Positions 11,837 to 63,561 of a stretch of 64,000 nucleotides of DNA are shown piece after piece; the first letter of the stretch is position 1; the number at the start of each line of letters is the position of its first letter. Origin of the DNA: Callorhinchus milii (Eukaryota). Under the pieces are notes generated by a model. It was not told the DNA's origin. It ran no database searches and was given only the letters and a program-made list of their open reading frames with translations. Location: the NCBI RefSeq assembly GCF_018977255.1, contig NW_024704812.1, forward strand, positions 62,001-126,000. Reading direction: 5' to 3'. Both the position numbers and the translations under genes were made by a program.

Positions 11837-13143
11837 TTACTTCCCGGGGCCATTACGACGTAAATTGTGATAAATATCTTTTTGGTGCTTTCCAAGGTTC
11901 TGAAACACAATGAATACAGGACAGATCATTACTATCAACACATTTACACAGAGCCTTTCATGTCAGGAGGACGTCCCAAGGAGCTGGACAGTCAGGGATT
12001 TGGATCTGAGCTGTAGGTTGGGATCAGGAGGGGTGGAGGGCGGGGAGGGTGGGGGGTGGGAGGGTGACCAAAGGAGCAGTTGATTGAAGACGAAAGTCTT
12101 GAGACAGGCCTTGAAGGAGGTGAGGGAGGGAGTGAGATGGAAGGATTGTGAGATGGAGTTCCAGAGGATGGGGCAGAGTGACTGAACGCCCGACCGATGG
12201 TGGGGCAGGCGAGGTGGGGGATGTGAAGCAGGCCGGAGGCAGAGGGGTGAGGAGGTCGCAGAGGTAGTGGGGAGCAACGTCATGGAGGGCTTTGAAGGTG
12301 AAGACCAGGATCTTGAACTGTATGCTGTGTGTGATGGGAAGCAGTGGAGTCGGGAAGGGTGGGGCTGATGGGGGGCAGAGCCTGGGGTGGGAGAGGACAG
12401 AGCTGCAGAATTAGTTCTGGATGATCTGCAGTTTGTAGAGGGAGGCGTTGGGAAGGCCGACAAGCAGGGAGTGGGCAAAGTCAAGCCTGTATGTGGTGAA
12501 CACATGGATGAGGGTCTCGGTGGCCTGTGGTGAGAGACAGTGGCGGAGACGGGCAATATGGTGGAGGTGGGGAAGGCATAGCAGGTCATGGCATGGATGA
12601 GGGGATGAAGGACAGTTTAGGGTCGTAAAGAACAGAGGTGGGACAGCAAGAGACTGAGCCGGGCTGACACACTGTCCATGTCAGCCATTTGTTTCCTCAC
12701 CATGTAAGGGCCTGAATCCTTCTGGGAGACATTGGCAGAGGAAGCCTAAAATATAACCAAACACAGTTTAGCTATTCAGTAGCAATGTCGTTAGCAGTAA
12801 ATAATAATAACCCTTGCACTTCATACAGCAGCTTATCATGTCATATCTTCGAGACGTCTCAAAGTGCTTCACAGGATACACCGTAAAGTGTAGTGACTGT
12901 GTTTTTATCATAATAATAATAATCCTTGCATTTGATACAGCACCTTATCACGACTTTGAGTCATATCAAAGGGGAGCCAATTGCCTACGGTCCTTGTCCG
13001 GGAATCGAAACCGGATTCTCTCGCTTGCGAGCCGAGTGCTCTAACCACTGAGCTACAGGACTGCACAGAACTTACTCTGACATCAATGTTCTCGTAGTGT
13101 GGTTCCCACTCTGTCTCTCGCTGTGCACTGCGGGGTGTCTTGG
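11837..13143 (-). CDS. g2 cytoplasmic exons Cyt1-3 (AKTPRSAQRETEWEPHYENIDVR / [15 protein letters not shown] / [20 protein letters not shown])
   Basis: Exons of 68, 45 and 63 nt with ag/gt boundaries; homologous to the g3-g5 tails; frame preserved. Confidence 0.7.
11960..12640 (-). mobile_element. L2-type LINE fragment in the Cyt2-Cyt3 intron (shared by g2-g5)
   Basis: Degenerate RT C-terminal motifs; homologues at 23960-24520, 38810-39370 and 51560-52110. Confidence 0.7.
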
Positions 13144-16100
13144 CTAGAAAATAAACAACAACTTGTTTATTCAAAGGCGCAGCCTCTGATGGTGGGATAG
13201 AGGGAACGAGGGATAAGCAGGAGGCCAGAGGGGGGGTTGAGCAGGTCGGAGAGGTAGGGAGGTACTAGGGCATGAAGGGGTTTGAAGTCACGTCAAATTG
13301 GAAGAAGTTCTCTCCCATTGCGTTAGTGACATGGCATTGATATGTGCCCTGATCGGTTGCCTGGAATTTACTGATGAGCAGTTTAGAGAAGGTTAGTCCT
13401 GAGGTGATGATGAACTTGCCGTCAGAGCCAGTGATGGAGTTGTCTTCCTTCGACCATGTAAAGTGTGCGGGCAGCAGGCCAGGGTCTGACACCCGCACTG
13501 TGTCTGTCAGTGACACGTCTAAGGTCACATCTGCCTCCTTCCCCACTTCCACCTGAGGCTCAGACCCTGACGCTCTCTGGGGTTTATCTGTGTAACAGCA
13601 CAGACAGCGTTCAGCAAAACAGCAACACAGTCACCCCAACAGTTAGTAGGAATAATAATAATCCTCCCGTTTGATACAGCGCCTTATCACGCCATCGAGA
13701 CATCTTAAATCCTATCTAAAGACCTTCCTCTTCGACCAACCGCACCTTCAGCCACCCTCCCACCCCCCAACCCACCCCCCTGCCCTCCACCCCTCCTGAC
13801 CCCAACTCCCAGCTCAGGTCCAAAAACCCTGACTGTGCAGCGTCCCGGGACATGTTTGCGACGTGAAGGGCGCTATACAAGTGTAATTTGTCATCGTTGT
13901 TGTTGTTCAGCCCTCAAGTCCTCACCAATGACTATAGAGCATTGACTGTCAGAGACAACATGGCGTCCAACACATGTGAAGATCTCTCGGGAGCTGAGCT
14001 GATCCTTTGTGATGGTGACATTCCCCTCGTTTGTCGCATTGACAATCGTCTGTCCGACCTTCAGCTGAAGGACAGAGTCTGGCACCCCACCAGCCCAGGA
14101 GCACATCAACACCAATGCTGTTCCTTTATCTGCTGCTCCGCATGTGATCTGCTGTGTGGGAGCCCCTTGAACAAGGCAAAGACAAACAGTCCAGTTATTG
14201 GCTCCACCTTGAGTTGTCCCCACCCTCGCCCGGCTCCACTCGCTCCCCATCCCTCAGAGGATACTGTTCAAGATCCTGGTGCTCAGCTTCAAAGCCCTCC
14301 ATTGCTTCACTTCTCCCTCCCTACCTCTATGGCCTCCTAACCCCCGACCAACCTGTCCGCTCCCTCCGCTCAGCGGGTGCTGCACTGCTCCATGTCCCCT
14401 CCCGCCTGCCCCACCGTCAGTGGTCGGGCCTTATGTCTGTGTTTGGGCCTTAGGCCTCTCTGCCCCCACCCTCTGAAACTTCCACAATCCCTCTGCCATG
14501 CCGCCCTCGCCTCCTTTATAACCCATCTCAAGATTTCCCTCTTCGACAGACTGTGCCGTCGGTCAACCTCCTACACCCATCTCCCTGCCCTCCAACCCAC
14601 CTGATAGCAACCCCCAGCTCAGGTGTGGGTCCCTGACTGTCCAGTGCCTTGGGACATCCTCCTGACGTGAAAGCCACTGTGTAAATGTCATGTGTTGTTA
14701 TTTAGACAGTGCCAATTTTGACTGAGATCTAACTCACTGTACACGAGGATTGAAACCTTCTCCGTGCGGCTAATCGTGGTGTAATCGCTCTCCACATTGC
14801 AAGTGTAATCCCCGCTGTTGTGGAACGTGAGGCTCTCTATAGGCAGCTGTGAGGTGTTGCCGGCAATGACTGTGGTGTTATGTGTCCACCTGTAGTTGCC
14901 CTCTGGGAAACATTTCGTCTGACAGTTGAGGGTCATAAATCTCCCTCCTTCCCACAGTACTGTCCTGGGAAGAAGCTGTCACATAGCTCCAGCCCGATCA
15001 CTTCAACTGTGGGTGGATCAGGGCCATCTGAAAGAATAAGCATTAAACTGTGACATAGATAGATAAATGGATGGCAGATGATAGTGTGAGAGAAACAGCC
15101 TTTTTACATGTATCACAGATCTCTGGCTGTTTGTGGGACGCTGCTGTGCGCAATTGGCTGCCGAGTTTTGCCCATAAAATCTACAGTCAATTCACTTGAC
15201 AGTATATTCTGTGAAGCGATTTGAGACGAGGTAAGGTGTTTTTTTTGGAGGGGTTAATACCTCCCGAAAAGTGATCTGCCAATCGACTAACAAGGGTTCC
15301 CACTTACTGCTCCGTAAGTAATGTGGTGTGTGTGTGTGTGGGTGTGCTTGTGGGGTGTGGGGCGCGGATGTGGGGTGTGGGTGGAGTAAGGAAAGTTGCT
15401 TAAGGTTTCGCTCTGACCCGCCCGGGAATTGAACCCAGGTCCTCTCTTGCTTGATTGTCAAATGCAAGGATGATTCTTATTCTTATGATGATAACTATGA
15501 TCATTATTATTGTTATTATCATTATTATTATTGCAGCTCAGGTCGCGTGAGGCTGAATTTAAGGTGATCTGTGGGTCATGGAGTTTAAAGCGAGTCAGGG
15601 TTCCTGTTCCTGGTCCCTAAACTCCCTCTCGGGCTCAAGTGTGGGTGTTGCAGTCTGGTGGGGAGATTAGGTTTGTCTGTGGTGCCCTCTACAGTCAAGT
15701 GGCCGATTGACACTCAAATAGTGATGGGATCTTTAACCTGAACAGGCAGATAGTTTAACGTCTCATCCAAACAACGGCTCTTCCAATGACAATAATAACT
15801 AGCTCCGTGGTTAGAGGCATTCCTTATTTGTGTTTGATTCCCAGCAGGGGGTGAATGCTTGGGCAAGTTTCCTTACTCCACACGCCTGATAATAATCCTT
15901 CAAGAAAATAAATTGGTGACTTCAATCTACGGCTGTTTGTGGGACGTTGCTGTGCGCAATTGTCTGCCGCGTTTTACCCACAAATATACAGTCAATTCAC
16001 TTTACAGTATATTCTGTGAAGCGTTTGAGTTGTCTAAAACACATGAAAAGCACTGTATCAAATGCAAGGATTATTATATTAGTTATAGAGCAAAACGTCG

Positions 16101-22290: not shown

Positions 22291-23836
22291 AATCATAATA
22301 ATAATAATCATTTGATATAGCGCCTTAACACGTCGAGATCTCAGAGCTCTTCACAGAGTACACTGTAAAGTGAATTGACTGTATATTTGTGGGCGAAACG
22401 CGGCAGACAATTGCGCACAGCAGTGTCCTACAAACAGTCGTGGATCGAAATAGCCAATATATTATTTTTTGTAAGGAATATTACCCCCAGAAAAGTAATC
22501 CACCAGTCGACTAACAACCGTATTCTTACTTACTGCAGTGTAAACAGAGGCGTGTGCGTGTGAAATAAGGACATTATGCCCCGACGCGCCCAGGAATCGA
22601 ACAAAGGTCCTCTCGCTTGTGAGGCGAGTGCTGTAACCACTGAGCTGCAGGACTCCAACGATAAAACCCCTGACAGTTAACCACCCGGAGCTCAGTGACC
22701 TGTTAGTTAGGAATGTCTGGAGTTAATCGCTGTACAGCTCAAAGGTTTCAGTTGGTTTGAAGCAGTGATTTCATGTGGAAGTGAAAGCCATTGTAAGATT
22801 AGTTCACTCATAAAGCTGGCTCGTGGCCTCAGATTCCTGTACCTTGCCTGCAGCTGGCTGGGATAATAATGGTAATAACAACAATAATAATAATAATAAT
22901 CCTTGCATTTGATATACGCTTTTCACGTCTTCAAGACGTCTCAAAGCGCTTCACAGAATAGTGAATTGACTACATTTGTAGGTGAAACACAGCAGCCAAT
23001 TGTACACAGCAGTGTCCCACAAACAGTCGTGGATTGGAATGACCAATTTATTATTGTTTTTTTTGAGGGATTATTATCAGGGTGTGGAGTAAGGAAACTT
23101 GTCCAAGGCCTCGCCCGGCCAGGAATCGAACTCAGGTCTCTCACTAATAATAATAGTAATAATAGTAATTCTTGCAAAAAAGACAAATTGGTCACTTCAA
23201 TCCACAACTGTTTGTGGGACACCTCTGTGCAATTAATTGGCTGTTGACTAACAAGCGAGATTACTTTCTGCTTGGTAAACAGAGGCGCGCGCGCGTGTGT
23301 GTGTGTATGTCTGCGTATGTGTCTGTGTGTGTGGAGTAAGGAAACTTGCCCTACGTTTCACCCTGAATACTGAACTCCTGGTAAATAACATTAACTTCTC
23401 AGTGAGCCGATAAGTCACAACAACAACAACTTGTATTTACACAGCGCCCTTTATGAGGGTAGCGTCTCGGAGTGGTGGAGCCTGACGCAGAGCCAGTTGG
23501 AGGGGAGAGACAGGCAGAAGGTGACCGTGAGCATGGTCAAAGAGAAAGATTTTCAGTCTTGATCTAAAAGAGGGAGAAGGATAGGAGAGGGGAGGAAAGG
23601 GGGAAAGGCGGAGTGATCGGGGGAGAGAACTCCACAAAGTCTGACAATACGACCCCCCATGATGGATCAGAGGGCACGAGGGACACGCAGGAGGCCGGAG
23701 GCAGCCGAGAGGAGGCAGTGGGTAGTGGGTTGGGGGGGTCAGCAGGTCGGAGAGAGAGGTAGGGAGGTGCCAGAGCCTGAAGGGATTTGTAGATGATTGA
23801 AAGGATCTTGAAATTGATCTACGTTGTCACAGCTAT

Positions 23837-25003
23837 CTACTTCCTGGTGCCATTACGACGTAAATTGTGATAAATATCTTTTTGGTGCTTTCCAAGGTCC
23901 TGAAACACAATGCAGATCGGACAGACCATTACTAACAACAACATTTTATACGGAACCTTTCACATCAGGAGGACGTCCCAAGGACCTGGAGAGTCAGGGA
24001 TTTGGATCTGAGCTGTGGGTTGGGATCAGGACGGGGTGGATGGTGGCGAGGGAGGGGTTAGGAAGGTGACCAGGTTGAGGAGGAAAGTCTTGTGACAGGC
24101 CTTGAAGGAGGTGAGGGAGTGATGAGGTGGGATGGAGGGACTGTGGGATGGAGTTCCAGAGGGTGGGGCAGAGTAACTGAAGGCCCAACCGATGGTGGGG
24201 CAGGTGAGGCGGGGGATGTGAAGCAGGCCGGAGCCCGCTGAGCAGAGAGAGCGGACAGGTTGTTAGGGGGTATGGGGAGCTGCAGAGTTAGTTCTGGATG
24301 ATCTGCAGTTTGTAGAGGGAGGCGTTGGGGAGGCCGACAAGCAGGGAGTGGGCAAAGTCAAGCCTGTTTGTGGTGAACACATGGATGAGGGCCTCGGTGG
24401 CCTGCGGTGAGAGACAGTGGCGGAGCCGGGCAATATGGCGGAGGTGGGGAAGGCATAGCAGGTCATGGTATGGATGAGGGGATGAAGGACAGTTTAGGGT
24501 CGTAAAGGACAGAGGTGGGACAGCAAGAGACTGAGCCGGGCTGACACACTGTCCGTGTCAGCCATTTGTTTCCTCACCATGTAAGGGCCTGAATCCTTCT
24601 GGGAGACATTGGCAGAGGAAGCCTAAAATATAACCAAACACAGTTTAGCTATTCATTAGCAATGTCGTTAGCAGTAAATAATAATAACCATTGCATTTCA
24701 TACAGTGCCTTATCACGTCTTCATAACATCTCAAAGCGCTTCACAGGATACACGGTAAAGAGTAGTGACTGTGTGGTTTCATAATAATAATTGTTGCATT
24801 TGATACAGTGCCTTATCACGTCTTTGAGTCGTATCAAAGGGGAGCCAATTGCCTAAGGTTTTGCCCTGTCCGGGAAACAAAACCGGATCCTCTCGCTTGA
24901 GAGGCGAGGACTCTAACCACTGAGCTACAGGACTGCACAGGACTTACTCTGACATCAATGGTCTCGTAGTATGGTTCACCCTCTGTCTCTTGCTGTGTTT
25001 TGG
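23837..25003 (-). CDS. g3 cytoplasmic exons Cyt1-3 encoding YETI plus the ITAM YMDL-x7-YHNL
   Basis: Exons of 56 nt (phase 1-0), 45 nt (0-0) and 63 nt (0-stop TAG), each with a pyrimidine-rich ag acceptor; the first two end in gtaagt/gtgagg donors. Confidence 0.85.
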
Positions 25004-28000
25004 CTGGAAAATAAACAACAACTTGTTTATTCAAAGGCACAGCCTCTGATGGTGGGATGGAGGGAACGAGGGACAAATAGGAGGCCGGTGTGGGGGCGGT
25101 TGGGGGTGAGCAGGTCGGAGAGGTAGGGAGGTGCCAGGGTATGAAGGGGTTTGAAAACGGGTGAGAGGATCTTGAAATCGTAGAAAATCTTGAAAATAAA
25201 CAAGAGTTTGGTGCTGAACCGGTGAACTTGGAGAGAAACGGAGAGGGAGGGACTGACAGAGAGAGAGAAAGTCAAAGGAGGAATGATTGATAGCGAGAGG
25301 GGGAGATGGATGGATAGAGACTGACAGGGAGTGAGATGGAGGGTGATAGAGAGAGAGGGGTAAAAACTGATAGAAAAGAGTGGGTGAAATGGAGAGGGAG
25401 AGACTGAGAGTGATGGAGGGTGATAGAGAGAAGGGGTAGAGACTGATAGAAAAGAGAGGGTGAAATGGAGGGGGAGAGGCTGATAGAGAGAGAGAGACAA
25501 AGTGGGAGAGACTGATAGTGAAAGAGAGTGAGATGGAGGGGCTAGAGACAGATAGAGAGAGACGGAGGGGTAGAGACTGACAGAGAGAGAGGACAGTGAG
25601 AGGGTGAGTGGCTGAGGGGGGTCTGGGCTGGTATATAAACAACAGAACATGAAGGTGAAAGGTTTTCCTGTGTATATACGGCCTCACCTTCCTTACGTTT
25701 CCTGTAAACGTACAACACAGCGAGTGTTGCAATGACCACCACAGCCACAGCCCCCACTATTGTCCCCACTATCAGGGCCACATTCACTGCGGAGAGAAAC
25801 ACCTTCACTGTCTCTCTATTAGATTATACTCTCGTAACATAGAGACCACAGCACAGACCTCATGTAAATCACATCAATCCTCGCATTTGATACAGCGCCT
25901 TATCACGTCGTTGTAAAATGTAGTAACTGTGTATTTTTTGGGCGGAACACAGCAGCCAATTGCGCACAGCGGTGACCCACAAACAGTTGTGGATTGATTG
26001 ACCAGATTTTTTGTTTTTTTGGAGGATTATGACCCCAGAAAGTGAACCGTCAATTGACTAACAGCGGGTTCCTACCTACTGCTGATAAACAGAGGTGCAC
26101 ATCTGTGTGTGTATGTGTGTCTGCGTGTGTGTGTTTGTGTGTGTGTGTGTCTGTGGGTGTTGTCTGCGGTGGGGTCTATATGTCTGTCTGTGAGTTTGTG
26201 TGTGTCTGTGACTGTGTAAGTGTGTGTGTGTGTGTGTGTGTCTGTGTGTGTGTCAACATATCATAACTTACCTCCGCCTTTCAAAGTCACGTCAAATTGG
26301 AAGAAGTTCTCTCCCATTGCGTTAGTGACATGGCATTGATATGTGCCCTGATCGGTTGCCTGGAATTTACTGATGAGCAGTTTAGAGAAGGTCGGTCCTG
26401 AGGTGATGTTGAACTTGCCGTCAGAGCCAGTGATGGAGTTGTCTTCCTTCGACCATGTAAAGTGTGCGGGCAGCAGGCCAGGGTCTGACACCCGCACTGT
26501 GTCTGTCAGTGACACGTCTAAGGTCACATCTGCCTCCTTCCCCACTTCCACCTGAGGCTCAGACCCTGACGCTCTCTGGGGTTTATCTGTGTAACAGCAC
26601 AGATGGTGTTCAGCAAAACAGCAACACAGTCACCCCAACAGTCAGTAGGAATAATAATAATCCTCCCGTTTGATACAGCGCCTTATCACGCCATCGAGAC
26701 ATCTTAAATCCCATCTAAAGACCTTCCTCTTCGACCAACCGCACCTTCAGCCACCCTCCCACCCCCAACCACCACCACCCCCTGCCCTCCACCCTCCTGA
26801 CCCCAACTCCTAGCTCAGGTCCAAAACCCAGACTATGCAGCGTCCCGGACGTGTTTGCGACGTGAAGGGCGCTTATACAAGTGTAATTTGTCATCGTTGT
26901 TGTTGTTCAGCCCTCAAGTCCTCACCAATGACTATAGAGCATTGACTGTCAGAGACAATATGGCGTCCAACACATGTGAAGATCTCTCGGGAGCTGAGCT
27001 GATCCTTTGTGATGGTGACATTCCCCTCGTTTGTCGCATTGACAATCGTCTGTCCAACCTTCAGCTGAAGGACAGAGTCTGCACCCCACCACCCCAGGAG
27101 CACATCACACCAATGCTGTTCCTTTATCTGGCTGCTCCGCATGTGATCTGCTGTGTGGGAGCCCCTTGAACAAGGCAAAGACAAACCAGTCCGTTATTGG
27201 CTCCACCTTGAGTTGTCCCCACCCTCGCCCGGCTCCACTGGCTCCCAATCCCTCAGAGGATACAGTTCAAGATCCTGGTGCTCAGCTTTAAAGCCCTCCA
27301 TGGCATCACTCCTCCCTCCCTACCTCTGTGACCTCCTAATCCCTGACCACCGGTCCGCTCCCTCTGCTTAGCGGGCTCCGGCCTGCTCCATGTTCCCCGC
27401 CCGCCCATCCCCTTAAGCCTCTCTGCCCCCACCCTCTGAAACTCCCACAATCCCTCTGCCACGCCTCCCTCACCTCCTTCAAAACCTATCTCAAGATCCT
27501 CCTCTTCGACAGACCGTGCTTTCAGTCACCCTCCTACACCCATCTCCCTGCCCTCCAACCCTCCTGATAGCAACCCCAGCTCAGATGTGGGTCCCTGACT
27601 GTCCAGCGCCTTGAGACATCCTCCTGACGTGAAAGCCACTGTGTAAATGCCATGTGTTGTTATTTAGACAGTGCCAATTTTGACTGAGATCTAACTCACT
27701 GTACACGAGGATTGAAACCTTCTCCGGTGTGGCTAATCGTGGTGTAATCATTCTTCACATTGCAAGTGTAATCCCCGCTGTTGTTGAACGTGAGGCTCTC
27801 TATAGGCAGCTGTGAGGTGTTGCCGGCAATGACTGTGGTGTTATGCGTCCACCTGTAGTTACACTCTGGGAACATTTCGTCTGACAGTTGAGCGTCACTA
27901 AATCTCCCTCCTTCCCACAGTACTGTCCTGGGACCAAACTGTCACATATCACCTGCCACTCATATATACTGTGGGTGGATCAGGGCCATCTGAAGAAAAA

Positions 28001-31000
28001 CATTAAGTGATGACATAGATAGATAAATGGATGGCAGATGATAGTGTGAGAGAAACAGCCTTTTTACATGTATCACAGGACTCCGACTGTTTGTGGGTCC
28101 CTCCTGTGCGCAATTGGCTTGCCGTCCCCCGACCCACCCACCCCACCATTGGCGGGAGAGCCTTCAGCCACTCTGCCCCAACCTCTGTAATCCTATCCCC
28201 CAGTCATTCCGCTTCACGCCCTCCTTAGCCTCCTTCAAGTCACGCCTCAAGACCCTCCTCTTCGACCATGCCATCGGCCATCCCCCTTCCCCGCCCCTCC
28301 TTCTCCCCCCGTGACTCCAGCTCGGGTCTGAAATGCTGTCATGTCCAGTGCCTTGGGACATCCTCCCGATGTGAAAGACGCTATACAAATGTAATCCTGT
28401 TGTTGTTGTTGTGTTTCACCCATAAAATATACAGTCAATTCACTTTACAGTATATTCTGTGAAGTGATTTGAGACGTGAGGAGGTGTTTTTTTTGGAGGG
28501 GTTAATACATTCGGAAAAGTGATCGGCAATCGACTAACAAGGGTTTCCGCTTACTGTTAGGTAAACAACAAAATACAACAACAATAATATTACATTTATA
28601 GAGCGTCCTTAACGTCGGGAGGACGTCCCAAGACATTGGCGCTGCTAAACAGTGGGGTGTATGTGTGTGGGGGGGTGGGGGTGGGGGCGAGTGTTGGGTG
28701 GAGTAATGTACCTGCCTAAGCTTTCGTCCTGACCCGCCCGGGAATCAAACCCAGGTCCTCTCGCTTGATAAGGCGATATATCAAGTGCAAGAATGATTAT
28801 TATTCTGATGATCATGACTATGATCATTATTATTGTTATTATCTTTACTGTTATTGCAGCTCAGGTCACGTGAGGCTGACTTTGGGTCATGGAGTTTAAA
28901 GCGAGTCGGGGTTCCTGCTCCTGGTCCCTAAACTCCCTCTCGGGCTCAGGTGTGTGTGTTGCAGTCTAGTGAGGAGATTAGGTTTGTCTGTGGGGCCCTC
29001 TACAGTCAAGTGGCCGATTGACACTCAGATAGTGATGGGATCTTTAACCTGAACAGGCAGATAGTTTAACGTCTCATCCAAACAGCGGCTCTTCAATGAT
29101 AATAACAATAGTGGAGTCCTGTTGCTCAATGGTTAGAGCATTTGCCTCGTAAGTGAACTTGAGTTCAATTCCATCAGGGTCGAATGCTTGGGCAAGTTTC
29201 CTTACTCCACACGCCTGATAATAAACCCTCCAGAAAGAAACTAATAGTAAATTGGTCACTTCAATCCACGGCTGTTTTGGGACGACGCTGTGTGCAATTG
29301 TGTTTCACCCACAAATATACAGTCAATTCACTTTACAATATATTCTGTGAAGCATTTTGAGATGTCTCAAAGACGTAAAGAGCGGGCATCAAATGAAAGG
29401 TTTATTATATTATTTATAGGGCAAAACATTGGGCAAGTTTCCTTACTCCGCACGCCTCTGTTTACCTCGCAGTGTGTGGGGACCCAGTTGTTAGTCGACT
29501 GATGGATCGCTTTTCCGAGGGTAAAAATTCCTTCAAAAAATAATATTAATGAATTGGTCCCTGAATCCCCAACTGTTTGTGGGACACTGCTGTGTGCAAT
29601 TGGTTGACATTTTATGGAGTGGTTATTACCTCCAGAAAGTGATCCGGCAATGAACTGACAAGTAGGTTCATACTTACTGCAGGTCAGCAGAGCCATGTCT
29701 ATGTGTGTTTCTATGAGTGGAGGACTATATGAGTTCCAAGTGCTGACGTGAGGCTTGAACCCACAACCTTCTGACTTATAGAGAGCTGAGCCAGGCTGGA
29801 ACAAGTAGGGATATACGTGGGCCAACTGCACTGTCCTGTTCAGCTCACGTTGATCTGGTTTTAACACAACAGCAAATATACTCACAGTTATCACCAGCTT
29901 CACTGGTTTGCTGCTGTCACTGTTCACCGGGTTACTGGCCGCGCAGATAAACCCTCCACTGTCGTTCCTGTGTACGGGGCTGATTGTCAGAGTGCTATTA
30001 GCTGCAGACAGTGTGTAACGTGGGGTTACAGGTAACGGGTGTCCATCCAGTGCCCAGGAATAGGTGGGGAACAATCCCATCACTGTACACCTCAATGTCG
30101 TTGTGTCTTTATTCTCGATAAATATCTCCTTGTCTGGACTCAGGCTGATGCTCACATTGGACAGCAGAGCTGTAAGATACGGATTTACTTTACTTAACAC
30201 AAAGCTGTTCTGCTTCAGTTCAAGATCCTGGTCCTCACCTTCAATGTCCTCTACAACCTCACTCCTCTCTCCTTACCTCCGCTCCCTCTGCTCAGCGGGC
30301 TCCGGCCTGCTTCATGCCCCCGCCCACCTGCCCCACCATCAGCGGTTGGGCCTTCAGCCTCTCTGCCCCAATCCACGACTGTTTGTGGGACACTGCTGTG
30401 TGCAATTGGCTGCAGAGTTTCGCCCACAAAATAGACCGGCAATTCACTTTACAGTATATCGTCCCAAAATACATCACTTTGCACTTCTCCACATTAAACT
30501 TCATCATGTCTGCCCATGTTACCAGTCTGTCTATGTCCTCTTGCAGTCTGTTACTCTCCTCCTCACTGTTTACTACTTTTCTTAGCTTAGTATCATGTGT
30601 GTGGCTCCTGATCTCACACACACTAAACTCTGTACCCCAGTCCTGCCCAGGCTCCAAACTTGGCAATTGTGCTCTCTATACCCAAGTCCAGGCCACCTTA
30701 AAGACCCATTTCAAGGCCTTCCTCTTCGACCGGCCATGCCTCCAGTCATCCTTCTATTCCAACCCTACCCGCCCTCCACCCCTCCTTATCCCAACCCCCA
30801 CCTCGAGTGCGGATCCCTGACTATCCAGTGCCTTGGGACGTCGTCCTGATATGAAAGCCACTGTTGTTGTTTACACCATGACATTTTTGACTGAGATAAC
30901 TAACTCACTGTACACGAGGATTGAAACCTTCTCCGTGCGGCTAATCGTGGTGTAATCATTCTTCACATTGCAAGTGTAATCCCCGCTGTTGTTGAACGTG

Positions 31001-34000
31001 AGGCTCTCTATAGGCAGCTGTGAGGTGTTGCCGGCAATGACTGTGGTTTATGTGTCCACCTGTAGTTACACTCTGGGAAACATTTCGTCTGACAGTTGAG
31101 GGTCATCAAATCTCCCTCCTTCCCACAGTACTGTCCTGGGACCAAACTGTCACATATCACCTGCCCACTCACAATAAAGGTGAGTGGATCAGGGCCATCT
31201 GAAAGAAAAAGCATTAAACTATGACACAGATAGATAAATGGGATGGCAGATGATAGTGTGAGAGAAACAGTCTTTTTACATGTATCACAGACCTCTGACT
31301 GTTTGTGGGTCGCTGCTGTGTGCAATTGGCTGCTGCGTTTTGCTCATAACATATACAGTCAATTCACTTTACAGTATATTCTGTGAAGCGTTTCAGTCGT
31401 CCAGAAGATGTGAAAAGCACTGTTATCAAATGCAAGGATTATTATATTATTGATAGAGCAAAACGTCGGCCAAGTTTCTCTCCTCCCAAACACACCCTCT
31501 GTTTACTGAGCAGTAATTAGGAACCCGGTTATTAGTCGATTGGTGAGAATCAAACCAAAGTCCTCCCACTTGCGAGGTGAGGGCTCCAACCACTACAGGA
31601 CCCCACTGTTTGTTCCTCTATTCACAGCATCAAACCCCAATGTAGAATATTCCAGCATTGCATTGGAGCTTCAGTCTGGACTACATGAGTTCCAAGTACT
31701 GACGTGAACCCACAACCTTCTGACTTATAGAGAGCTGAGCCAGCTGAACAAGTAGGGATATACGTGGGCCAACTGCACTGTCCTGTTCAGCCTCACGTTG
31801 ATCTGGTTTTAACACAACAGCAAATATACTCACAAGTTATCACCAGCTTCACTGGTTTAACTGCTGTCACTGCCCACCAGGTGACTGGCCGTGCAGATAA
31901 ACCCTCCACTGTCGCTCCTGTGTACGGGGTGATTGTCAGAGTGCTATTATCTGCAGACAGTGTGTAACGTGGGGTTACAGGTAACGGTGTCCATCCAGTG
32001 CCCAGGAATAGGTGGGGAACGATCCCATTGCTGTACATCTTAGTGTCACTGTGTCTTTATTCTCGATAAATATCTCCTTGTCTGGACTCAGACTGATGCT
32101 CACATTGGACACCGGAGCTGTAAGATAACGCGTTTCATTTCATTCAGAAACTTGTTCAGATTCACTTCACTGACACAAACTTGTTCGGAGTCACTTTGCT
32201 GAACCCTACACTTTATTTCTGACGCTGTTTGTTATGATTCACTGTTTATTCAGGTCTCAGTCTGGCTCATTTGGTAGCACAATGTTATGGTTTAAAGCCC
32301 CACTCTTGGAGCTCACAGTCCAGGTTTATTGGCTTAATGAATGAAATGAAATGGGCCCGGGGGCCGGATGCGGCCCGTGGGCCACCAGTTGGCCCACCCT
32401 GCTCTCCCGATGCTCTGAAGCCAGGGTGGCTGCCGTGGGCCGGATTCCCCTATTTGTCAAAGATCCACGAGCCACATCCAACCTGAGGCCATTTCCACTC
32501 CCTCCCTCCCTCCCTCCCTGGTCAGCGGCAGGAGCTGATGGTTGGGAAGACCCAGCGACCAGAGCCTTTACTGCAGTCTTCAAGGAGAGCAAGCAAATAC
32601 GTCGCTGTTCCTCACACTCCCCCTCCCTCTCCCCCCCTCCCTCTCTCTGCCCCCACTCTTTTTCACTCCCCTCTCTCCCCCCTCTCTTTCTCCCCCCCCC
32701 TCCCTTGCTCCCAAGATCCACTGGCACTTGCCTGGCTTTCCTATCACACACTAAACTCTGTAACCCATCACCCCCGCCCTCACCAGACCCCACTGGCTCC
32801 TTAATCACACACTAAACTCTGTACCCCATCACCTGAGCCCTCGCCAGGCCCCACTGGGTCCCTATCACACACTATACTCTGTACCCCATCACCTCCGCCC
32901 TCGCCCCCGCCCTCGCCAGGCCCCACTGGCTCCCTATCACACACTAAACTCTGTACCCCATCACCCCCGCCCTCGCCAGGCCCCACTGGCTCCCTATCAC
33001 ACACTAAACTCTGTACCCCATCACCCCCGCCCTCGCCAGGCCCCACTGGCTCCCTATCACACACTAAACTCTGTACCCCATCACCCCCGCCCTCGCCAGG
33101 CTCCACTGTTTCCGTATCACCAAACAGATCGATTTTGAGATCATCTCACTCGTTTTCAAATCCCTTCATGCCATGGTACTGCCCTAAACTCTCCGACCTG
33201 CTCACCCACCCACTGCACTCTCGGTGCCTCCTCTTGGCTGGTTCCATCCTTGTCTTGTTTTTCCCTCGTCCCCTCCACTCCACCATCAATGGCTGTGTCT
33301 TCAGCCACTGCGTCACTTTCTCCCTCAATCCCAACGCCTCGCCCCTCCCTCCCCACCTTCAAATCGCACCTAAAGACCTTCCATTTTGATCGTGTTTACA
33401 GTCACCGCCTTCCTCTCCCTCTCCCCCCCCGGGTCGGGGTCAGACTCGGCCCCTGCAAAGTGCTCCGGGACACTCCGCGTGAAGGGCGCTGTTGTTGTTA
33501 CTCACTGTGAACACGCAGTTGTAAATCTGCTGAGGCTGCTCCGAGATTAAGTCAAACACAGACACTGAGTACGAACCGGAATCAGCCGGAGTCACTGGTG
33601 TCCAGACGTAGAGTGGCATTGTTGGGGTAAGCTCAGCCCGACCCTGGTAGTCTCCATAGTACTTCACTGCTGTTCCTTTGCTGATGCGATTGTGGAGCTG
33701 GTGTGACTTTCCATATTATACTAAAATTTCCCAGTTTCACTGGGCATTACCAGGAAGTACACAGATAGTCCGGCTGTGGCTTCTATCTGACTCTCAGTGA
33801 CGGTCAGACTGAAAGCTCCCACCTGCTCTGTAATACAAAACACACACAACAGTCAATCACCAAATATCACAATGTAATAATAATATTCATCCTTGCATTT
33901 GATCTCGCGTCTTATCACGTCTTTGAGATGTCTCAAAGCGCTTCACAGAATTACTGTAAGGTGAATTGACTATATTTGTGGACAAAAGTTTTGAAGGAAT

Positions 34001-35112
34001 TATTACCCCCAGAAAAGCAATCCGCCAATCGACTAACAACCAGGTTTCTACTTACTTCTGATAAACAGAGGCGTGTGGGTACGTGTGAAGTAAGGAAACT
34101 TGCCCAACGTTTCCCCCAGAGGGGAAGCGAACCCAGATCTCTCACTTACAAGGTGAGCGCTCTTACCACTGAACTACAGAACTGCACAATTCAGAAAATG
34201 TCATTTGTTTAAGATGAAGATAGATTTAGATAGATTTCTGCTAGAAAATAATAGCTTGGGATACAGTAGATAGACCCACAGATACACACAGAAAGACATA
34301 GAGAGAGAGGAGACAGACACATACACACACACCGAGACAGAGACACACACACAGAGGCAGAGAGAGGTACCATTTGTGTAGCGACTTTCACATCGGGAGG
34401 ATATCTCATAGATAGACACACTCACAGACACAGAGAGACACTCACACACATAGAGAGACACACACAGGCACATCCACAAACACACAGAGAAGGAGACACA
34501 GACACACAACAACGCACAGACACTCACAAACAGAGAGATACACAGACAAACAGACACTCACAAACAGAGAGATACACAGACAAACAGAGACACACATAGA
34601 CACTCACAAATGCATATAGAGAGACACACACACACTCATACAACGCGGACACGGAGACACACACACACACACTCACAAACTGAGAGAAACACACACACTC
34701 CCAAACAGAGACACAGACACACACACTGAGAGACAGAACACAGACACACACACAGAGAGACACATACACTTAGACACACAGAGAGACACATACAGAAAGA
34801 CATAGATACACGCGGATAGATAGAGAAACATACCGAGAGACAGACACCCCCCAGATAATCACACACACACACACACAGACTGAGACATACACTGTGAGAC
34901 AGACACACACATCCAGACAGAGATATATATACACACACACACAGTGGGAGACACACACAGTATATAGTTTGGGACATGTCGAACGACTGCCAGGACGGTG
35001 GGAGATGAACGAGATGGACCTTTGCTTATGTTGTTACCAGTAACTCACCCAAATTAGTGACCAGAATGAGCAGAGCAGCCACCAACATCCTCGCGGCTGG
35101 AAACCACCACAT
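23837..35112 (-). CDS. g3: 7-Ig ITAM-bearing CEACAM/VSIG10L-like receptor (V-C1-C2-C1'-C2'-C3-C4-TM-tail); many 1-bp indels as assembled
   Basis: Exons: leader 35112-35049; V 33827-33506; C1 32117-31834; C2 31198-30909; C1' 30169-29886; C2' 27989-27700; C3 27164-26926; C4 26586-26272; TM 25786-25688; Cyt1 25003-24948; Cyt2 24622-24578; Cyt3 23899-23837. V to C3 are each 1-2 nt short of paralog length; C4, TM and tail are intact. Confidence 0.75.
25688..25786 (-). CDS. g3 TM exon ([33 protein letters not shown])
   Basis: tttctctccgcag| acceptor, G|gtgagg donor, 99 nt; hydrophobic span followed by basic stop-transfer RKRK. Confidence 0.9.
30460..30605 (-). mobile_element. CR1 RT internal fragment (copy at 58840-58985)
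   Basis: [42 protein letters not shown]. Confidence 0.8.
32350..32402 (-). mobile_element. hAT/Charlie-like DNA transposon terminus (copies at 18185-18215, 47890-47940, 60735-60785)
   Basis: Reverse complement CAGGGTGGGCCAACTGGTGGCCCACGGGCCGCATCCGGCCC resembles hAT-Charlie terminal sequence. Confidence 0.55.
32742..33120 (+). repeat. 60-bp VNTR, about 6 units (about 5 units at 61129-61434; about 2 at 18620-18760)
   Basis: Unit tcacacactaaactctgtaccccatcacccccgccctcgccaggccccactggctcccta. Confidence 0.9.
33506..33827 (-). CDS. g3 IgV exon (near-identical to the g5 V, six single-base indels)
   Basis: Aligns to 61822-62145 with very few substitutions; 322 vs 324 nt. Confidence 0.7.
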
Positions 35113-35241
35113 ATACACGTTAGGGAGAGAGACAGAGACAAACTGAATATGGGCTGTCACCTGAACGCAGGGCAGAGTCTGCTGTTAATCATTACTGTTA
35201 CTGTAGGAGACCCTGACACTGGCTCTAATGGCACCCGGTGC

Positions 35242-35301
35242 ACTTTCACTTTGTCAGGAATTAATATGTTAATTTATGAGATAAATAGATTTACTTCCTG
35301 T
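35242..35301 (-). promoter_or_regulatory. g3 proximal promoter IRF/GATA/ETS motifs
   Basis: actttcacttt at 35242-35252; acttcctgt at 35293-35301. Confidence 0.5.
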
Positions 35302-38685: not shown

Positions 38686-39855
38686 CTACTTCCTGGTGCC
38701 ATTACGACGTAAATTGTGATAAATATCTTTTTGGTGCTTTCCAAGGTCCTGAAACACAATGCAGATCGGACAGACCATTACCAACAACAACATTTTACAC
38801 TGAACCTTTCACATCAGGAGGACGTCCCAAGGACCTGGAGAGTCAGGGATTTGGATCTGAGCTGTGGGTTGGGATCAGGAGAGGGTGGATAGTGGCGATG
38901 TAGGCGTTAGGAAGGTGACCAGGTTGAGGAGGAAAGTCTTGTGACAGGCCTTGAAGGAGGTGAGGGAGTGATGGGGTGGGATGGAGGGACTGTGGGATGG
39001 AGTTCCAGAGGGTGGTGCAGAGTAACTGAAGGCCCAACCGATGGTGGGGCAGGTGAGGCGGGGGATGTGAAGCAGGCCGGAGCCCGCTGAGCAGAGAGAG
39101 CGGACAGGTTGTTAGGGGGTATGGGGAGCTGCAGAGTTAGTTCTGGATGATCTGCAGTTTGTAGAGGGAGGCGTTGGGGAGGCCGACAAGCAGGGAGGGG
39201 GCAAAGTCAAGCCTGTTTGTGGTGAACACATGGATGAGGGTCTCGGTGGCCTGCGGTGAGAGACAGTGGCGGAGCCGGACAATATGGTGGAGGTGGGGAT
39301 GGCATAGCAGGTCATGGCATGGATGAGGGGATGAAGGACAGTTTAGGGTTGTAAAGGACAGAGGTGGGACAGCAAGAGACTGAGCCGGGCTGACACACTG
39401 TCCGTGTCAGCCATTTGTTTCCTCACCATGTAAGGGCCTGAATCCTTCTGGGAGACATTGGCAGAGGAAGCCTAAAATATAACCAAACACAGTTTAGCTA
39501 CTCATTAGCAATGTTGTTAGCAGTAAATAATAATAACCCTTGCACTTCATACAGTGCCTTATCACGTCTTCATAACATCTCAAAGCGCTTCACAGGATAC
39601 ACGGTAAAGAGTAGTGACTGTGTGGTTTCATAATAATAATAATCGTTGCATTTGATACAGTGCCTTATCACGTCTTTGAGTCGTATCAAAGGGGAGCCAA
39701 TTGCCTAAGGTTTTGCCCTGTCCGGGAAACAAAACCGGATCCTCTCGCTTGAGAGGCGAGGACTCTAACCACTGAGCTACAGGACTGCACAGGACTTACT
39801 CTGACATCAATGGTCTCGTAGTGTGGTTCACCCTCTGTCTCTTGCTGTGTTTTGG
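38686..39855 (-). CDS. g4 cytoplasmic exons Cyt1-3 (HYETI plus ITAM)
   Basis: Exons of 56, 45 and 63 nt; open and in phase. Confidence 0.85.
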
Positions 39856-40103
39856 CTGGAAAATAAACAACAACTTGTTTATTCAAAGGCACAGCCTCTG
39901 ATGGTGGGATGGAGGGAACGAGGGACAAATAGGAGGCCGGTGTGGGGCGGTGGGGGTGAGCAGGTCGGAGAGGTAGGGAGGTGCCAGGGCATGAAGGGGT
40001 TTGAAAACGAGTGAGAGGATCTTGAAATCGTAGAAAATGTTGAAAATCTACAAGAGTTTGGTGCTGAACCGGTGAACTTGGAGAGAAATGGAGAGGGAGG
40101 GAC

Positions 40104-40149
<46 letters not shown>

Positions 40150-43100
40150 GCAGTGAGAGATAGGGTTAAAGCCTGACAGAAAGACAAAGAGGGAGCGATT
40201 GAAAGAGAGAGGTGGAGATGGATGGATAGAGACTGATAGAGAGTGAGATGGAGGGTGATAGAGAGGGGGGGATAGAGGCTGATAGAAAGGAGATGGTGAA
40301 ATGGAGTGGGAGAGACTGATAGAGAGAGAGAGAGAGATAGAGGGGGAGAGACTGATGGAGGAAGAGTGAGACGGAGAGGGTAGAGACTGATTGAGCTTGT
40401 GACTGAGGTGGATAGAGACTAATGGAGGGAGTGTGAGACAGAAGGGAAGAGACTGATAGAGAGACATGAAGGGGGAGAGACTGATAGTGAGAGAGAGTGA
40501 GACGGAGGGGGAGAGACTGATAGAGAGAGACAAGGGGGAGAGACTGATAGTGAAAGAGAGCGAGACGGAGGGGATAGAGACAGATAGAGTGAGACGGAGG
40601 GGTAGAGACTGACAGAGAGAGAGGACAGTGAGAGGGTGAGTGGCTGAGGGGGTCTGGGCTGGTATATAAACAACAGAACATGAAGGTGAAAGGTTTTCCT
40701 GTGTATATACGGCCTCACCTTCCTTACGTTTCCTGTAAACGTACACCACAGCGAGTGTTGCAATGACCACCACAGCCACAGCCCCCACTATTGTCCCCAC
40801 TATCAGGGCCACATTCACTGCGGAGAGAAACACCTTCACTGTCTCTCTATTAGATTATACTCTCGTAACATAGAGACCACAGCACAGACCTCATGAACAT
40901 CATATCAATCCTCGCATTTGATACAGTGCCTTATCACGTCGTTGTAAAGTGTAGTAACTGTGTATTTTGTGGGCGGAACACGGCAGCCAATTGCACACAG
41001 CGGTGACCCACAAACAGTCGTGGATTGATTGACCAGATTTTTTGTTTTTTTGGAGGGATTATGACCCCCGGAAAGTGAACCGTCAATTGACTGACAAGTG
41101 GCTTCGTACCTTCTGCTGGTGAACAGAGGTGTGTGCATGTGTCTCTATGTGTGTCTGTGTGTGTCTGTGTGTGTGTGTCTGTCTGTGTGTGTACTGACAT
41201 ATCATAACTTACCTTCGCCTTTCAAAGTCACGTCAAATTGGAAGAAGTTCTCTCCCATTGCGTTAGTGACACGGCATTGATATGTGCCCTGATCGGTTGC
41301 CTGGAATTTACTGATGAGCAGTTTAGAGAAGGTTAGTCCTGAGGTGATGTTGAACTTGCCGTCAGAGCCAGTGATGGAGTTGTCTTCCTTCGACCATGTA
41401 AAGTGTGCGGGCAGCAGGCCAGGGTCTGACACCCGCACTGTGTCTGTCAGTGACACGTCTAAGGTCACATCTGCCTCCTTCCCCACTTCCACCTGAGGCT
41501 CAGACCCTGACGCTCTCTGGGGTTTATCTGTGTAACAGCACAGACGGCGTTCAGCAAAACAGTAACACAGTCACCCCAACAGTCAATAGGAATAATAATA
41601 ATCCTCCCGTTTGATACAGCGCCTTATCACGCCATCGAGACGTCTCAAATCCCATCTAAAGACCTTCCTCTTCGACCAACCGCACCTTCAGCCACCCTCC
41701 CACCCCAAAACCCACCCCCCTGCCCTCCACCCCTCCTGACCCCAACTCCCAGCTCAGGTCCAAAAACCCAGACTGTGCAGCGTCCCGGGACGTGTTTGCG
41801 ACGTGAAGAGTGCTATACAAGTGTAATTTGTTATTGTCGCTGCTGTTCAGCCCTCAAGTCCTCACCAATGACTATAGAGCATTGACTGTCAGAGACAACA
41901 TGGCGTCCAACACATGTGAAGATCTCTCGGGAGCTGAGCTGATCCTTTGTGATGGTGACATTCCCCTCGTTTGTCGCATTGACAATCGTCTGTCCGACCT
42001 TCAGCTGAAGGACAGAGTCTGGCACCCCACCAGCCCAGGAGCACATCAACCCCACTGCTGTTCCTTTATCCGCTGCTCCGCATGTGATCTGCTGTGTGGG
42101 AGTCCCTTGAACAAGGCAAAGACAAACAGTCCAGTTATTGGCTCCACCTTGAGTTGTCCCCACCCTCGCCCGGCTCCACTGGCTCCCCATCCCTCAGAGG
42201 ATACAGTTCAAGATCCTGGTGCTCAGCTTTAAAGCCCTCCATGGCCTCACTCCTCTGTCCCTACCTCTGTGACCTCCTAACCCCTGACCAAGCTGTCCAC
42301 TCCCTCCGCTCATTAGGCTCCAGCCTACTCCATGTCCCTTCCCGGCCCACTCCATCATCGGCGTTCTGCCCTAATTTGCCCCATCCTATGAAACTCCCAT
42401 AACCGCTCCGCCTCGCCCTCTCCCTCGCCTTCTTCAAACCTGTGCGATCTACTGTGCCTTCGTCACCCTCCTACACCCATCTCCCTGCCCTCCAACCCTC
42501 CTGATAGCAACCCCCAGCTCAGGTGTGGGTCCCTGACTGTCCAGCGCCTTGGGACATCCTCCTGACGTGAAAGCCACTGTGTAAATGCCATGTGTTGTTA
42601 TTTAGACAGTGCCAACTTTGACTGAGATCTAACTCACTGTACACGAGGATTGAAACCTTCTCTGTGCGGCTAATCGTGGTGTAATCATTCTTCACATTGC
42701 AAGTGTAATCCCCGCTGTTGTAGAACGTGAGGCTCTCTATAGGCAGCTGTGAGGTGTTGCCGGCAATGACCGCGGTGTTATGTGTCCACGTGTAGTTACA
42801 CTCTGGGAAACATTTCGTCTGACAGTTGAGGGTCATCAAATCTCCCTCCTTCCCACAGTACTGTCCTGGGAAGAAGCTGTCACATAGCTCCAGCCCGATC
42901 ACTTCAACTGTGGGTGGATCAGGGCCATCTGAAAGAAAAAGCATTAAACTATGACATAGATAGATAAATGGATGGCAGATGATAGTGTGAGAGAAACAGC
43001 CTTTTTACATGTATCACAGGAACCTGGGAATCTTGTTTGACCCTGAACTGTCCTTTCTCCCCCACATCCGCGCCATGACAGCACTGCCTACCGCCACCTC

Positions 43101-51435: not shown

Positions 51436-53049
51436 CTACTTCCTGGTGCCATTACGACGTAAATTGTGATAAATATCTTTTTGGTGCTTTCCAAGGTCCT
51501 GAAACACAATGCAGATCGGACAGACCATTACTAACAACATTTTACACTGAACCTTTCACATCAGGAGGACGTCCCAAGGACCTGGACAGTCAGGGATTTG
51601 GATCTGAGCTGTGGGTTGGGATCAGGACGGGGTGGATGGTGGCGAGGTAGGGGTTAGGAAGGTGACCAGGTTGAAGAGGAAAGTCTTGTGACAGGCCTTG
51701 AAGGAGGTGAGGGAGTGATGGGGTGGGATGGAGGGACTGTGGGATGGAGTTCCAGAGGGTGGGGCAGAGTAACTGAAGGCCCAACCGATGGTGGGGCAGG
51801 TGAGGCGGGGGATGTGAAGCAGGCCGGAGCCCGCTGAGCAGAGAGAGCGGACAGGTTGTTAGGGGGTATGGGGAGCTGCAGAGTTAGTTCTGGATGATCT
51901 GCAGTTTGTAGAGGGAGGCGTTGGGGAGGCCGACAAGCAGGGAGGGGGCAAAGTCAAGCCTGTTTGTGGTGAACACATGGATGAGGGCCTCGGTGGCCTG
52001 TGGTGAGAGACAGTGGCGGAGCCGGGCCATATGGCGGAGGTGGGGAAGGCATATCAGGTCATGGCACGGATGAGGGGATGAAGGACAGTTTAGGGTCGTA
52101 AAGGACAGAGTTGGGACAGCAAGAGACTGAGCCGGGCTGACACACTGTCCGTGTCAGCCATTTGTTTCCTCACCATGTAAGGGCCTGAATCCTTCTGGGA
52201 GACATTGGCAGAGAAGCCTAAAATATAACCAAACACAGTTTAGCTATTCATTAGCAATGTCGTTAGCAGTAAATAATAATAACCATTGCATTTCATACAG
52301 TGCCTTATCACGTCTTCATAACATCTCAAAGCGCTTCACAGGATACAACAACAACAACAACAAGATTCCATTTATAAAGCGCCTTTCACGTCAGGAGGAC
52401 GTCCCAAGCGCTGCACAGTTGGGTCATGACCCGAGCAGGGGGGAAATGGTCAGGGTAAGGGGAGGGAAGGGAGGGAGCGAGGAGGGGGAAGAGAGTCGAG
52501 AGGGGAGCTGAAGGCTCGGTCAAAGAGAAAGGTTTTGAGACCGGCCTTGAAGGAGGAAAGGGAGGAAGCGGCGAAGGCACTGGGGGATAGAGTTCCAGAG
52601 CCTGGGGGCTGAGAGGCTGAAGGCCCGACCACCGATGGTAGGGCGATTGGGGCGGGGGACGTGGAGCAGACCGGAGCCAGAGGAACGGAGGGTACGGGCA
52701 GGTAGGTAGGGGGATAGTAGGTTGGAGAGGTAGGAGGGAGCAAGGCCGTGAATGGCCTTGTAGGTGAGGATGAGGATCTTGAAATCTTGATACACGGTAA
52801 AGAGTAGTGACTGTGTGGTTTCAAAAATAATAATAATCGTTGCATTTGATACAGTGCCTTATCACGTCTTTGAGTCGTATCAAAGGGGAGTCAATTGCCT
52901 AAGGTTTTGCCCTGTCCGGGAAACAAAACCGGATCCTCTCGCTTGAGAGGCGAGGGCTCTAACCACTGAGCTACAGGACTGCACAGCACTTACTCTGACA
53001 TCAATGGTCTCGTAGTATGGTTCACCCTCTGTCTCTTGCTGTGTTTTGG
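51436..53049 (-). CDS. g5 cytoplasmic exons Cyt1-3 (YETI plus ITAM; Cyt2 is 1 nt short as assembled)
   Basis: Exons of 56, 44 and 63 nt; gagaagcc vs gaggaagcc in paralogs. Confidence 0.75.
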
Positions 53050-54549
53050 CTGGAAAATAAACAACAACTTGTTTATTCAAAGGCACAGCCTCTGATGGTG
53101 GGATGGAGGGAACGAGGGACAAATAGGAGGCCGGTGTGGGGGCGGTGGGGGGTGAGCAGGTCGGAGAGGTAGGGAGGTGCCAGGGCATGAAGGGGTTTGA
53201 AAACGAGTGAGAGGATCTTGAAATCGTAGAAAATCTTGAAAATATACAAGAGTTTGTACATTTGCTGAACCGGTGAACTTGGAGAGAAACGGAGAAGGAG
53301 GCACTGATAGAGAGACAGAGAGAGAGAGAGAGATTGGTAGTGAGAGATAGGGTTAAAGCCTGACAGAAAGACAAAGAGGGAGCGATTGAAAGAGAGAGGG
53401 GGAGATGGATGGATAGAGACTGATAGAGAGTGAGATGGAGGGTGATAGAGAGACAGGGGTAGAGGCTGATAGAAAGGAGAGGGTGAAATGGAGTGGGAGA
53501 GACTGATAGAGAGAGAGAGAAAGATGGAGGGGGAGAGACTGATGGAGGAAGAGTGAGACGGAGAGGGTAGAGACTGATTGAGTTTGTGATGGAGGTGGAT
53601 AGAGACTAATAGAGGGAGTGTGAGACAGAGGGGAAGAGACTGACAGAGTGAGATAAAGAGGGAGAGACTGAAAGTGAGAGAGAGTGAGACGGAGGAGGAG
53701 TGATTGATAGCGAGAGGGGGAGATGGATGGATAGAGACTGACAGAGAGTGAGATGGAGGGTGATAGAGAGAGAGGGGTAGAAACTGATAGAAAAGAGTGG
53801 GTGAAATGGAGAGGGAGAGACTGAGAGTGATGGAGGGTGACAGAGAGAAGGGGTAGAGACTGATAGAAAAGAGAGGGTGAAATGGAGGGGGAGAGGCTGA
53901 TAGAGAGAGAGAGACAAAGTGGGAGAGACTGATAGTGAAAGAGAGTGAGATGGAGGGGCTAGAGACAGATAGAGAGAGACGGAGGGGTAGAGACTGGCAG
54001 AGAGAGAGGACAGTGAGAGGGTGAGTGGCTGAGGGGGTCTGGACTGGTATATAAACAACAGAACATGAAGGTGAAAGGTTTTCCTGTGTATATACGGCCT
54101 CACCTTCCTTACGTTTCCTGTAAACGTACACCACAGCGAGTGTTGCAATGACCACCACAGCCACAGCCCCCACTATTGTCCCCACTATCAGGGCCACATT
54201 CACTGCGGAGAGAAACACCTTCACTGTCTCTCTATTAGATTATACTCTCGTAACACAGAGACCACAGCACAGACCTCATGTAAATCATAGCAATCCTCGC
54301 ATTTGATACAGCGCCTTATCACGTTGTTGTAAAGTGTAGTAACTGTGTATTTTGTGGGCGGAACACAGCAGCCAATTGCGCACAGCGGTGACCCACAAAC
54401 AGTCGTGGATTGATTGACCAGATTTTTTGTTTTTTTGGAGGGATTATGACCCCCAGAAAGTGAACCGTCAATTGACTAACAGCGGGTTCCTACCTTCTGC
54501 TGATAAACAGAGGTGCACATCTGTGTGTGTATGTGTGTCTATGTGTGTC

Positions 54550-54580
<31 letters not shown>

Positions 54581-63431: not shown

Positions 63432-63561
63432 ATACACGTTAGGGAGAGAGACAGAGACAAACTGAATATGGGCTGTCACCTGAACGCAGGGCAGAGTCTG
63501 CTGTTAATCATTACTGTTACTGTAGAGAGACCCTGACACTGGCTCTAATGGCACCCGGTGC

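Follow-up and report, generated by a model that had tools for sequence, protein, structure and literature searches.

Transcribed micro-exons encode an ITAM-type tail in a tandem array of CEACAM-family receptor genes of the elephant shark Callorhinchus milii

The three micro-exons at the 3′ end of copy B, one of four gene copies in the window (the whole 64-kb stretch of C. milii DNA analyzed here), are real, transcribed last coding exons that are spliced into an ITAM-type motif. They are part of a tandem array of C. milii CEACAM-family receptor genes with a unit of ~14 kb, of which the tails of copies A, B, C and D lie in the window. In RefSeq the array sits on a 259,846-nt contig, and the window holds the array alone. 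We consider it likely that the copy B exons are a CEACAM-array tail spliced to YMDL-x7-YHNL, which would give a self-signalling activating or endocytic receptor. The 3′ end of copy B consists of the following features, in window coordinates, with a slash marking a splice:

23401..23836, minus strand: 3′ UTR of copy B, its limit being the reach of the RNA contigs (X1, 1313 nt; X3, 953 nt)
23837..23899, minus strand: Cyt3 exon of copy B, 63 nt including TAG, phase 0-stop, acceptor tttcag; finishes YM/DL and contains YHNL
24578..24622, minus strand: Cyt2 exon of copy B, 45 nt, phase 0-0, between ttttag and gtgagg; its last two residues start the first YxxL
24862..24933, minus strand: tRNA-Glu-like SINE head (ARAGORN) in the Cyt1-Cyt2 intron, 15 nt downstream of the Cyt1 donor
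24948..25003, minus strand: Cyt1 exon of copy B, 56 nt, phase 1-0, between ttccag and gtaagt, with RNA junctions; contains the upstream YxxI motif
25688..25786, minus strand: TM exon of copy B, 99 nt, phase 1-1, encoding an uncharged TM and an RKRKE stop-transfer, with AG/GT borders and RNA junctions

The lengths of the three tail exons (56, 45 and 63 nt) and their phases (1-0, 0-0 and 0-stop) had been proposed in an initial annotation made from the sequence, and both were borne out by the AG/GT borders and by RNA. In the joined tail, YMDL is formed only by the phase-0 splice between Cyt2 and Cyt3 and is followed by a 7-residue spacer and then YHNL; this translation, together with the RNA junction 23899/24578, confirms the YxxL-x7-YxxL attributed to that splice. 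Compared with the ITAM core, YxxL/I-x6-8-YxxL/I, the spacer is 7 and L occupies both +3 positions. Such a core has a frequency of ~0.2% in random or shuffled 59-residue tails. The upstream Y/HYETI motif described for Cyt1 is likewise present, as YYETI in copy B, where it sits 16 residues upstream of YMDL in the joined translation, and as HYETI in copy C. Translation of the 99-nt exon at 25688-25786 gave a TM with zero charged residues, in agreement with the uncharged TM already annotated. Contig depth at 24862-24933 is very high because the SINE has many copies across the window; these copies are dispersed through it and dominate the RNA and DNA contig depth.

Transcript evidence was obtained by aligning the assembled contigs of four RNA runs, all from C. 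milii, to positions 23300-27300. Single spliced contigs were found in three RNA runs from two studies (X1, 1313 nt; X2, 317 nt; X3, 953 nt), and the junctions in the RNA contigs (23899/24578, 24622/24948, 25003/25688, 25786/26272 and 26586/26926) are all GT..AG on the minus strand. In these contigs, exactly 45 letters of Cyt2 separate Cyt3 from Cyt1. The equivalent junctions on copy D have a depth of 65 and 145 in RNA runs and of zero in the DNA runs X4 and X5. Since the junctions are found in RNA and are absent from two DNA runs, they represent splices rather than genomic deletions. The predicted TM-Cyt1-Cyt2-Cyt3 junctions are present in the RNA contigs of three runs. Skipping of Cyt1 or the use of another phase, named in the initial annotation as evidence that would count against the tail, was not seen in the RNA contigs, from which rare isoforms are dropped.

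A different 3′ end is given by the RefSeq model P0152 (XP_042201587.1), which reads through the Cyt2 donor and has the upstream YxxI only, the ITAM being lost. Retention of the Cyt2-Cyt3 intron as in P0152 has zero coverage in the X1 and X2 contigs, in which rare forms would likewise be dropped. The P0152 tail may belong to a minor isoform that keeps the intron, or may be an artefact of gene modelling.

Four RefSeq models end in the spliced tail, which is therefore already in public gene models. The C-terminus of XP_042201595.1 (‘CEACAM5-like [Callorhinchus milii]’) equals it residue for residue, and the C. milii cluster representatives P0158, P0159 and P0160 have the same tail, identical or with one substitution. 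The models other than the CEACAM5-like one are named CEACAM1-like X3, VSIG10-like and ‘titin-like, partial’. A tail-only search of 5.8 billion proteins returned matches in C. milii proteins only. A literature search found no paper on the elephant-shark CEACAM cluster.

The genes of the array share a layout of leader, cysteine-free IgV-like N domain, CEACAM-type C2 domains, two further Ig domains, uncharged TM and three-exon tail. Upstream of the TM exon, the following exons of copy B were located:

26272..26586, minus strand: membrane-proximal Ig exon of copy B, 315 nt, intact, with RNA junctions; Pfam I-set/ig on the copy D equivalent
26926..27164, minus strand: Ig3 exon of copy B, seen in part in RNA; three indels relative to the contig and frameshifted relative to copies A, C, D and RNA
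33504..33852, minus strand: N-domain (IgV-like) exon of copy B, with stops and frameshifts in this assembly
35041..35112, minus strand: leader exon of copy B, located by tblastn with the RefSeq model P0160

Several features place these genes in the CEACAM family, a family that the initial annotation had not named. The mature N domain of copies A, C and D contains no cysteine and the canonical intradomain disulfide is absent, as expected of a CEACAM. Against PDB, the N exon gave many weak matches to CEACAM N domains (CEACAM1, E=1.4e-4), with CD276 marginally better, and the best solved-structure matches of the A-type C2 exon were CEA 1e07 (E=1.3e-37) and CEACAM1 (1.2e-22). The tail is also of CEACAM type: it is spread over several small exons, and a phase-0 intron interrupts the first YxxL. 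Pfam detected generic Ig families only, with weak V-set/I-set matches for the N exon. The nearest homologues in other species are mostly named CEACAM1, CEACAM5 and CEACAM20, names that come from automatic annotation; CEACAM-named homologues occur in Anolis, carp, catshark, bamboo shark, sawshark, Mobula and bat (CEACAM20). The two membrane-proximal Ig domains are VSIG10-like by automatic naming, and a HMMER representative search with the membrane-proximal Ig exon returned mostly giant multi-Ig proteins, P0006, P0009 and P0065 being the informative matches.

The other three tails of the array are arranged as follows:

11837..13143, minus strand: copy A tail; Cyt1 13076-13143 (68 nt, HYENI), Cyt2 12701-12745, Cyt3 11837-11899 (YM/NL...YHNL); TM exon absent
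38686..40817, minus strand: copy C tail, intact; TM 40719-40817, Cyt1 39800-39855 (HYETI), Cyt2 39427-39471, Cyt3 38686-38748
51436..54202, minus strand: copy D tail; TM 54104-54202, Cyt1 52994-53049, Cyt2 52174-52217 (44 nt), Cyt3 51436-51498

The initial annotation had taken the tail to be conserved in all four complete paralogs. Four tails do exist, but copy A is without a TM exon, Cyt2 of copy D is frameshifted in this assembly, the ectodomain of copy B is broken, and the similarity itself is uninformative. The tail exons of B, C and D are 98-100% identical and their flanking introns are equally similar (98-99%). With introns as similar as exons, the similarity is put down to recent duplication or gene conversion and carries no sign of constraint, and conservation between the paralogues was rejected as evidence of it. 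The coding differences among the B, C and D tails (L/V in the TM and Y/H before YETI) are both non-synonymous. Cyt1 of copy A has a 12-nt in-frame insertion and reads HYENI, which contains a YxN motif; this copy also has YM/NL and a different stop. At 13143-13630 of copy A, a deletion of ~1.4 kb, matching positions 53201-54637 of copy D, has removed the TM exon along with the splice donor of the membrane-proximal Ig exon, and the ITAM exons of copy A are therefore orphaned. Domain number varies between copies, copy D having two A/B pairs. In copy C, the first A-type C2 exon (47406-47672) ends in a frameshift (..FICTASQPGGQ and a stop), and a second, intact copy lies at 45093-45431.

In the assembly, Cyt2 of copy D (52174-52217) is 44 nt long: one C of CTTCCTCT is missing, and the resulting frameshift would abolish the ITAM. 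The missing base is present in every X4 and X5 DNA contig over the site, and an RNA contig with zero differences to the 3′ UTR and TM exon of copy D carries a 45-nt Cyt2. Because independent DNA and RNA contigs have the 45 nt, the shorter form is probably a private allele or a mistake in the assembly.

The state of copy B is harder to judge. It may be a pseudogene, with an intact tail that is a recent remnant under no selection and with protein made from other copies only, and we give this reading somewhat less than an even chance. In its favor, the N exon contains stops and frameshifts, the A1, B1, B2 and Ig3 exons carry frameshifts when compared with copies A, C and D and with the RNA contigs, and the RefSeq model of copy B, the ‘titin-like, partial’ protein, is in a shifted frame. 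If the assembly is correct, the N-exon rule of PMC2832619 would make copy B a pseudogene. The X1 and X3 RNA contigs, moreover, show 0 differences to copy D, compared with 9 substitutions plus 3′ UTR indels relative to copy B. The damage itself, however, may not be decay. Over 10.5 kb, B (25242-35680) and D (53657-64000) differ by 155 substitutions and 65 indels, 52 of them single-base; the single-base indels are evenly distributed over introns and exons, with five Ig exons broken, and the indel-to-substitution ratio is ~0.4 for this pair vs ~0.1 for other copy pairs. On sequence grounds, this pattern suggests consensus errors or poor polishing more than decay; as a pseudogene, copy B would be a very unusual one. 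The pseudogene is also made less likely by copy D, whose 1-nt Cyt2 deletion is contradicted by independent contigs of both DNA and RNA, and by the X2 contig, which has a B-type TM codon. This contig carries other differences as well, and may therefore derive from a further copy outside the window. Since five exons are frameshifted in the assembly and the RNA contigs fit D better, copy B is probably not the gene from which the protein is made.

The exon structure of the tail follows a known pattern. A phase-0 split of the first YxxL is characteristic of CEACAM ITAMs (PMC2832619, PMC5112662), and a phase-0 split at Yx/xL is found in all classical ITAMs (PMC4536121). The C. milii tail has this split (YM/DL, phase 0, RNA-confirmed), as a genuine ITAM module should, and the split supports the ITAM reading without adding novelty. 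An ITAM ‘hidden across micro-exons’, highlighted in the initial annotation, is thus not unusual, the phase-0 split being a known ITAM hallmark. The suggested resemblance of the spacer to CD3-epsilon did not hold: when the tail was compared with all PDB chain sequences, no CD3 chain appeared up to E=10. The only matches were two chance ones (SLC30A1, E ~1.5), with nothing below E=1.5, and a CD3-epsilon-related tail was rejected. Apart from a weak match to a Mobula tail, no significant similarity to other ITAM tails was found.

The tail departs from the strict definition in its acidic residue. An ITAM needs E/D-x0-2-Y according to PMC2832619 and is otherwise ‘ITAM-like’, and the consensus of PMC4536121 is D/E/NxxY. 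The tail reads K-D-S-G-P-Y, with D at -4 and S at -3; an acidic residue is absent from -1 to -3 and the DSGPY is off the PMC4536121 consensus. With D at -4, the motif is ‘ITAM-like’ by the strict definition (PMC2832619). A YxN Grb2-type motif, conserved in marsupial, frog and CEACAM20 tails (PMC2832619, PMC5112662), is matched by YHNL, and by YENI in copy A.

For the self-signalling receptor that we favor, established ITAM biology suggests that ligand-driven clustering would lead to phosphorylation of the tail tyrosines by Src-family kinases. The doubly phosphorylated motif, with its spacing of 7, would then bind the Syk/ZAP70 tandem SH2 domains without the help of an adaptor with a charged TM, and we infer that the tail may recruit Syk/ZAP70 directly. 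Recruitment of Grb2-type SH2 by pYHNL, and by pYENI in copy A, would also be possible. The resulting receptor would resemble CEACAM3, CEACAM20 and the ITAM CEACAMs of marsupials and frog.

The same tail could instead be a CEACAM3-type endocytic or phagocytic ‘ITAM-like’ motif. Its tyrosines would again be phosphorylated by Src-family kinases, Vav/Rac, Nck, PI3K or Grb2-type adaptors would carry most of the signal, Syk docking not being the main route, and YxxL/I would double as YxxPhi sorting signals. We regard this as a serious alternative, if one on the doubtful side. The position of the acidic residue and the fit of YHNL (YENI in copy A) to the YxN motif both favor it, and Syk-independent routes are described in the CEACAM3 literature. 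On the other hand, a spacing of exactly 7 with L at both +3 positions is the canonical core, CEACAM3 itself can reportedly engage Syk (PMC5096018), and Syk and Vav/Nck/Grb mechanisms can coexist. For the ‘ITAM-like’ class as a whole, Src-kinase/Vav/Grb-type signalling would be an equally good model as direct Syk recruitment. It is very improbable that the ITAM-like spacing arose by chance in a tail rich in tyrosine and plays no part in signalling: the paralogues show no constraint signal, but the chance rate is ~0.2%, the phase-0 split lies exactly at Yx/xL, where every classical ITAM has it (PMC4536121), and the same layout is seen in Mobula and CEACAM20 tails.

Two of the homologues examined share this layout, in which a YxN motif lies upstream and an ITAM at the C-terminus. 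The Mobula hypostoma CEACAM5-like X2 protein ends in YENF...YMEL-NLGDRSV-YSDL-KR and the stop, and gave a BLASTP match to the C. milii tail at E=0.002. Bat CEACAM20 ends in YDNI...YEVL-x7-YCQM; BLASTP gave no alignment of the C. milii tail to it, the motif layout alone being in common. It is possible, although in our view less likely than not, that the upstream YxN(I/F) and phase-0-split C-terminal ITAM of elephant shark, Mobula and CEACAM20/marsupial CEACAMs are one homologous module.

Other cartilaginous fish proteins share the ectodomain, and some of them differ in the tail. The genes of Mobula hypostoma, Pristiophorus japonicus (CEACAM5-like) and Mustelus asterias (‘CD22-like’) belong to the same ectodomain family as the C. 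milii genes, whereas sawshark, Mustelus and the C. milii protein P0009 have an ITIM-type or ITIM-degenerate tail (VEYAQI, VIYAQV, DLYAKV) instead of an ITAM. P0009 (C. milii, on a 16.7-kb contig), P0065 (P. japonicus) and P0170 (M. asterias) have the same membrane-proximal Ig domains with a different TM, and their long tails contain repeated D(L/F/M)YA(Q/K/R)V motifs, with true ITIMs in Mustelus (VEYAQI, VIYAQV). From their sequences, proteins of this type are candidates for the inhibitory partner of the ITAM-type genes. In a tblastn search with the P0009, P0065 and P0170 tails, no ITIM-type alternative tail exons were found in the window. If the module is indeed one, then together with the ITIM-type P0009, sawshark and Mustelus proteins it would mean that paired activating and inhibitory CEACAMs predate the jawed-vertebrate radiation; the pairing would have been present in the jawed-vertebrate common ancestor and not repeatedly evolved.

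Holocephalans are among the most basal living jawed vertebrates. The array provides transcript-backed ITAM-type CEACAMs with the canonical split-ITAM exon pair, expanded in tandem in a holocephalan, and supports an early origin of adaptor-independent activating CEACAMs. ITAM-bearing CEACAM homologues have been described to range from cartilaginous fish to humans (Chang et al., PMC3628338). No new mechanism is revealed. Public gene models already exist, and the arrangement of the exons is the textbook one for ITAMs. For comparative tests of signalling, the C. milii tail offers a naturally occurring example that is very divergent.

The closest known system is that of the ITAM and ITAM-like CEACAMs (human CEACAM3, CEACAM4, CEACAM19 and CEACAM20, and those of marsupials and Xenopus; Kammerer & Zimmermann 2010; Zimmermann & Kammerer 2016). 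The C. milii genes have in common with them a cysteine-free IgV-like N domain, C2 domains, an uncharged TM and a micro-exon tail with a phase-0-split first YxxL and a YxN motif. The two also share an organization in tandem, fast-evolving multigene clusters. They differ in that C. milii has three Cyt exons where eutherian ITAM-like CEACAMs have four (PMC2832619), and in its two extra membrane-proximal Ig domains and holocephalan lineage. The classical ITAM subunits (CD3 chains, FcR-gamma, DAP12, CD79a/b) are, in contrast, short adaptors that have an acidic residue in the TM and associate with ligand-binding chains. In C. milii the ITAM is on the ligand-binding chain itself and the TM is uncharged, and the acidic residue of the tail stands at -4 where that of the classical subunits stands at -3.
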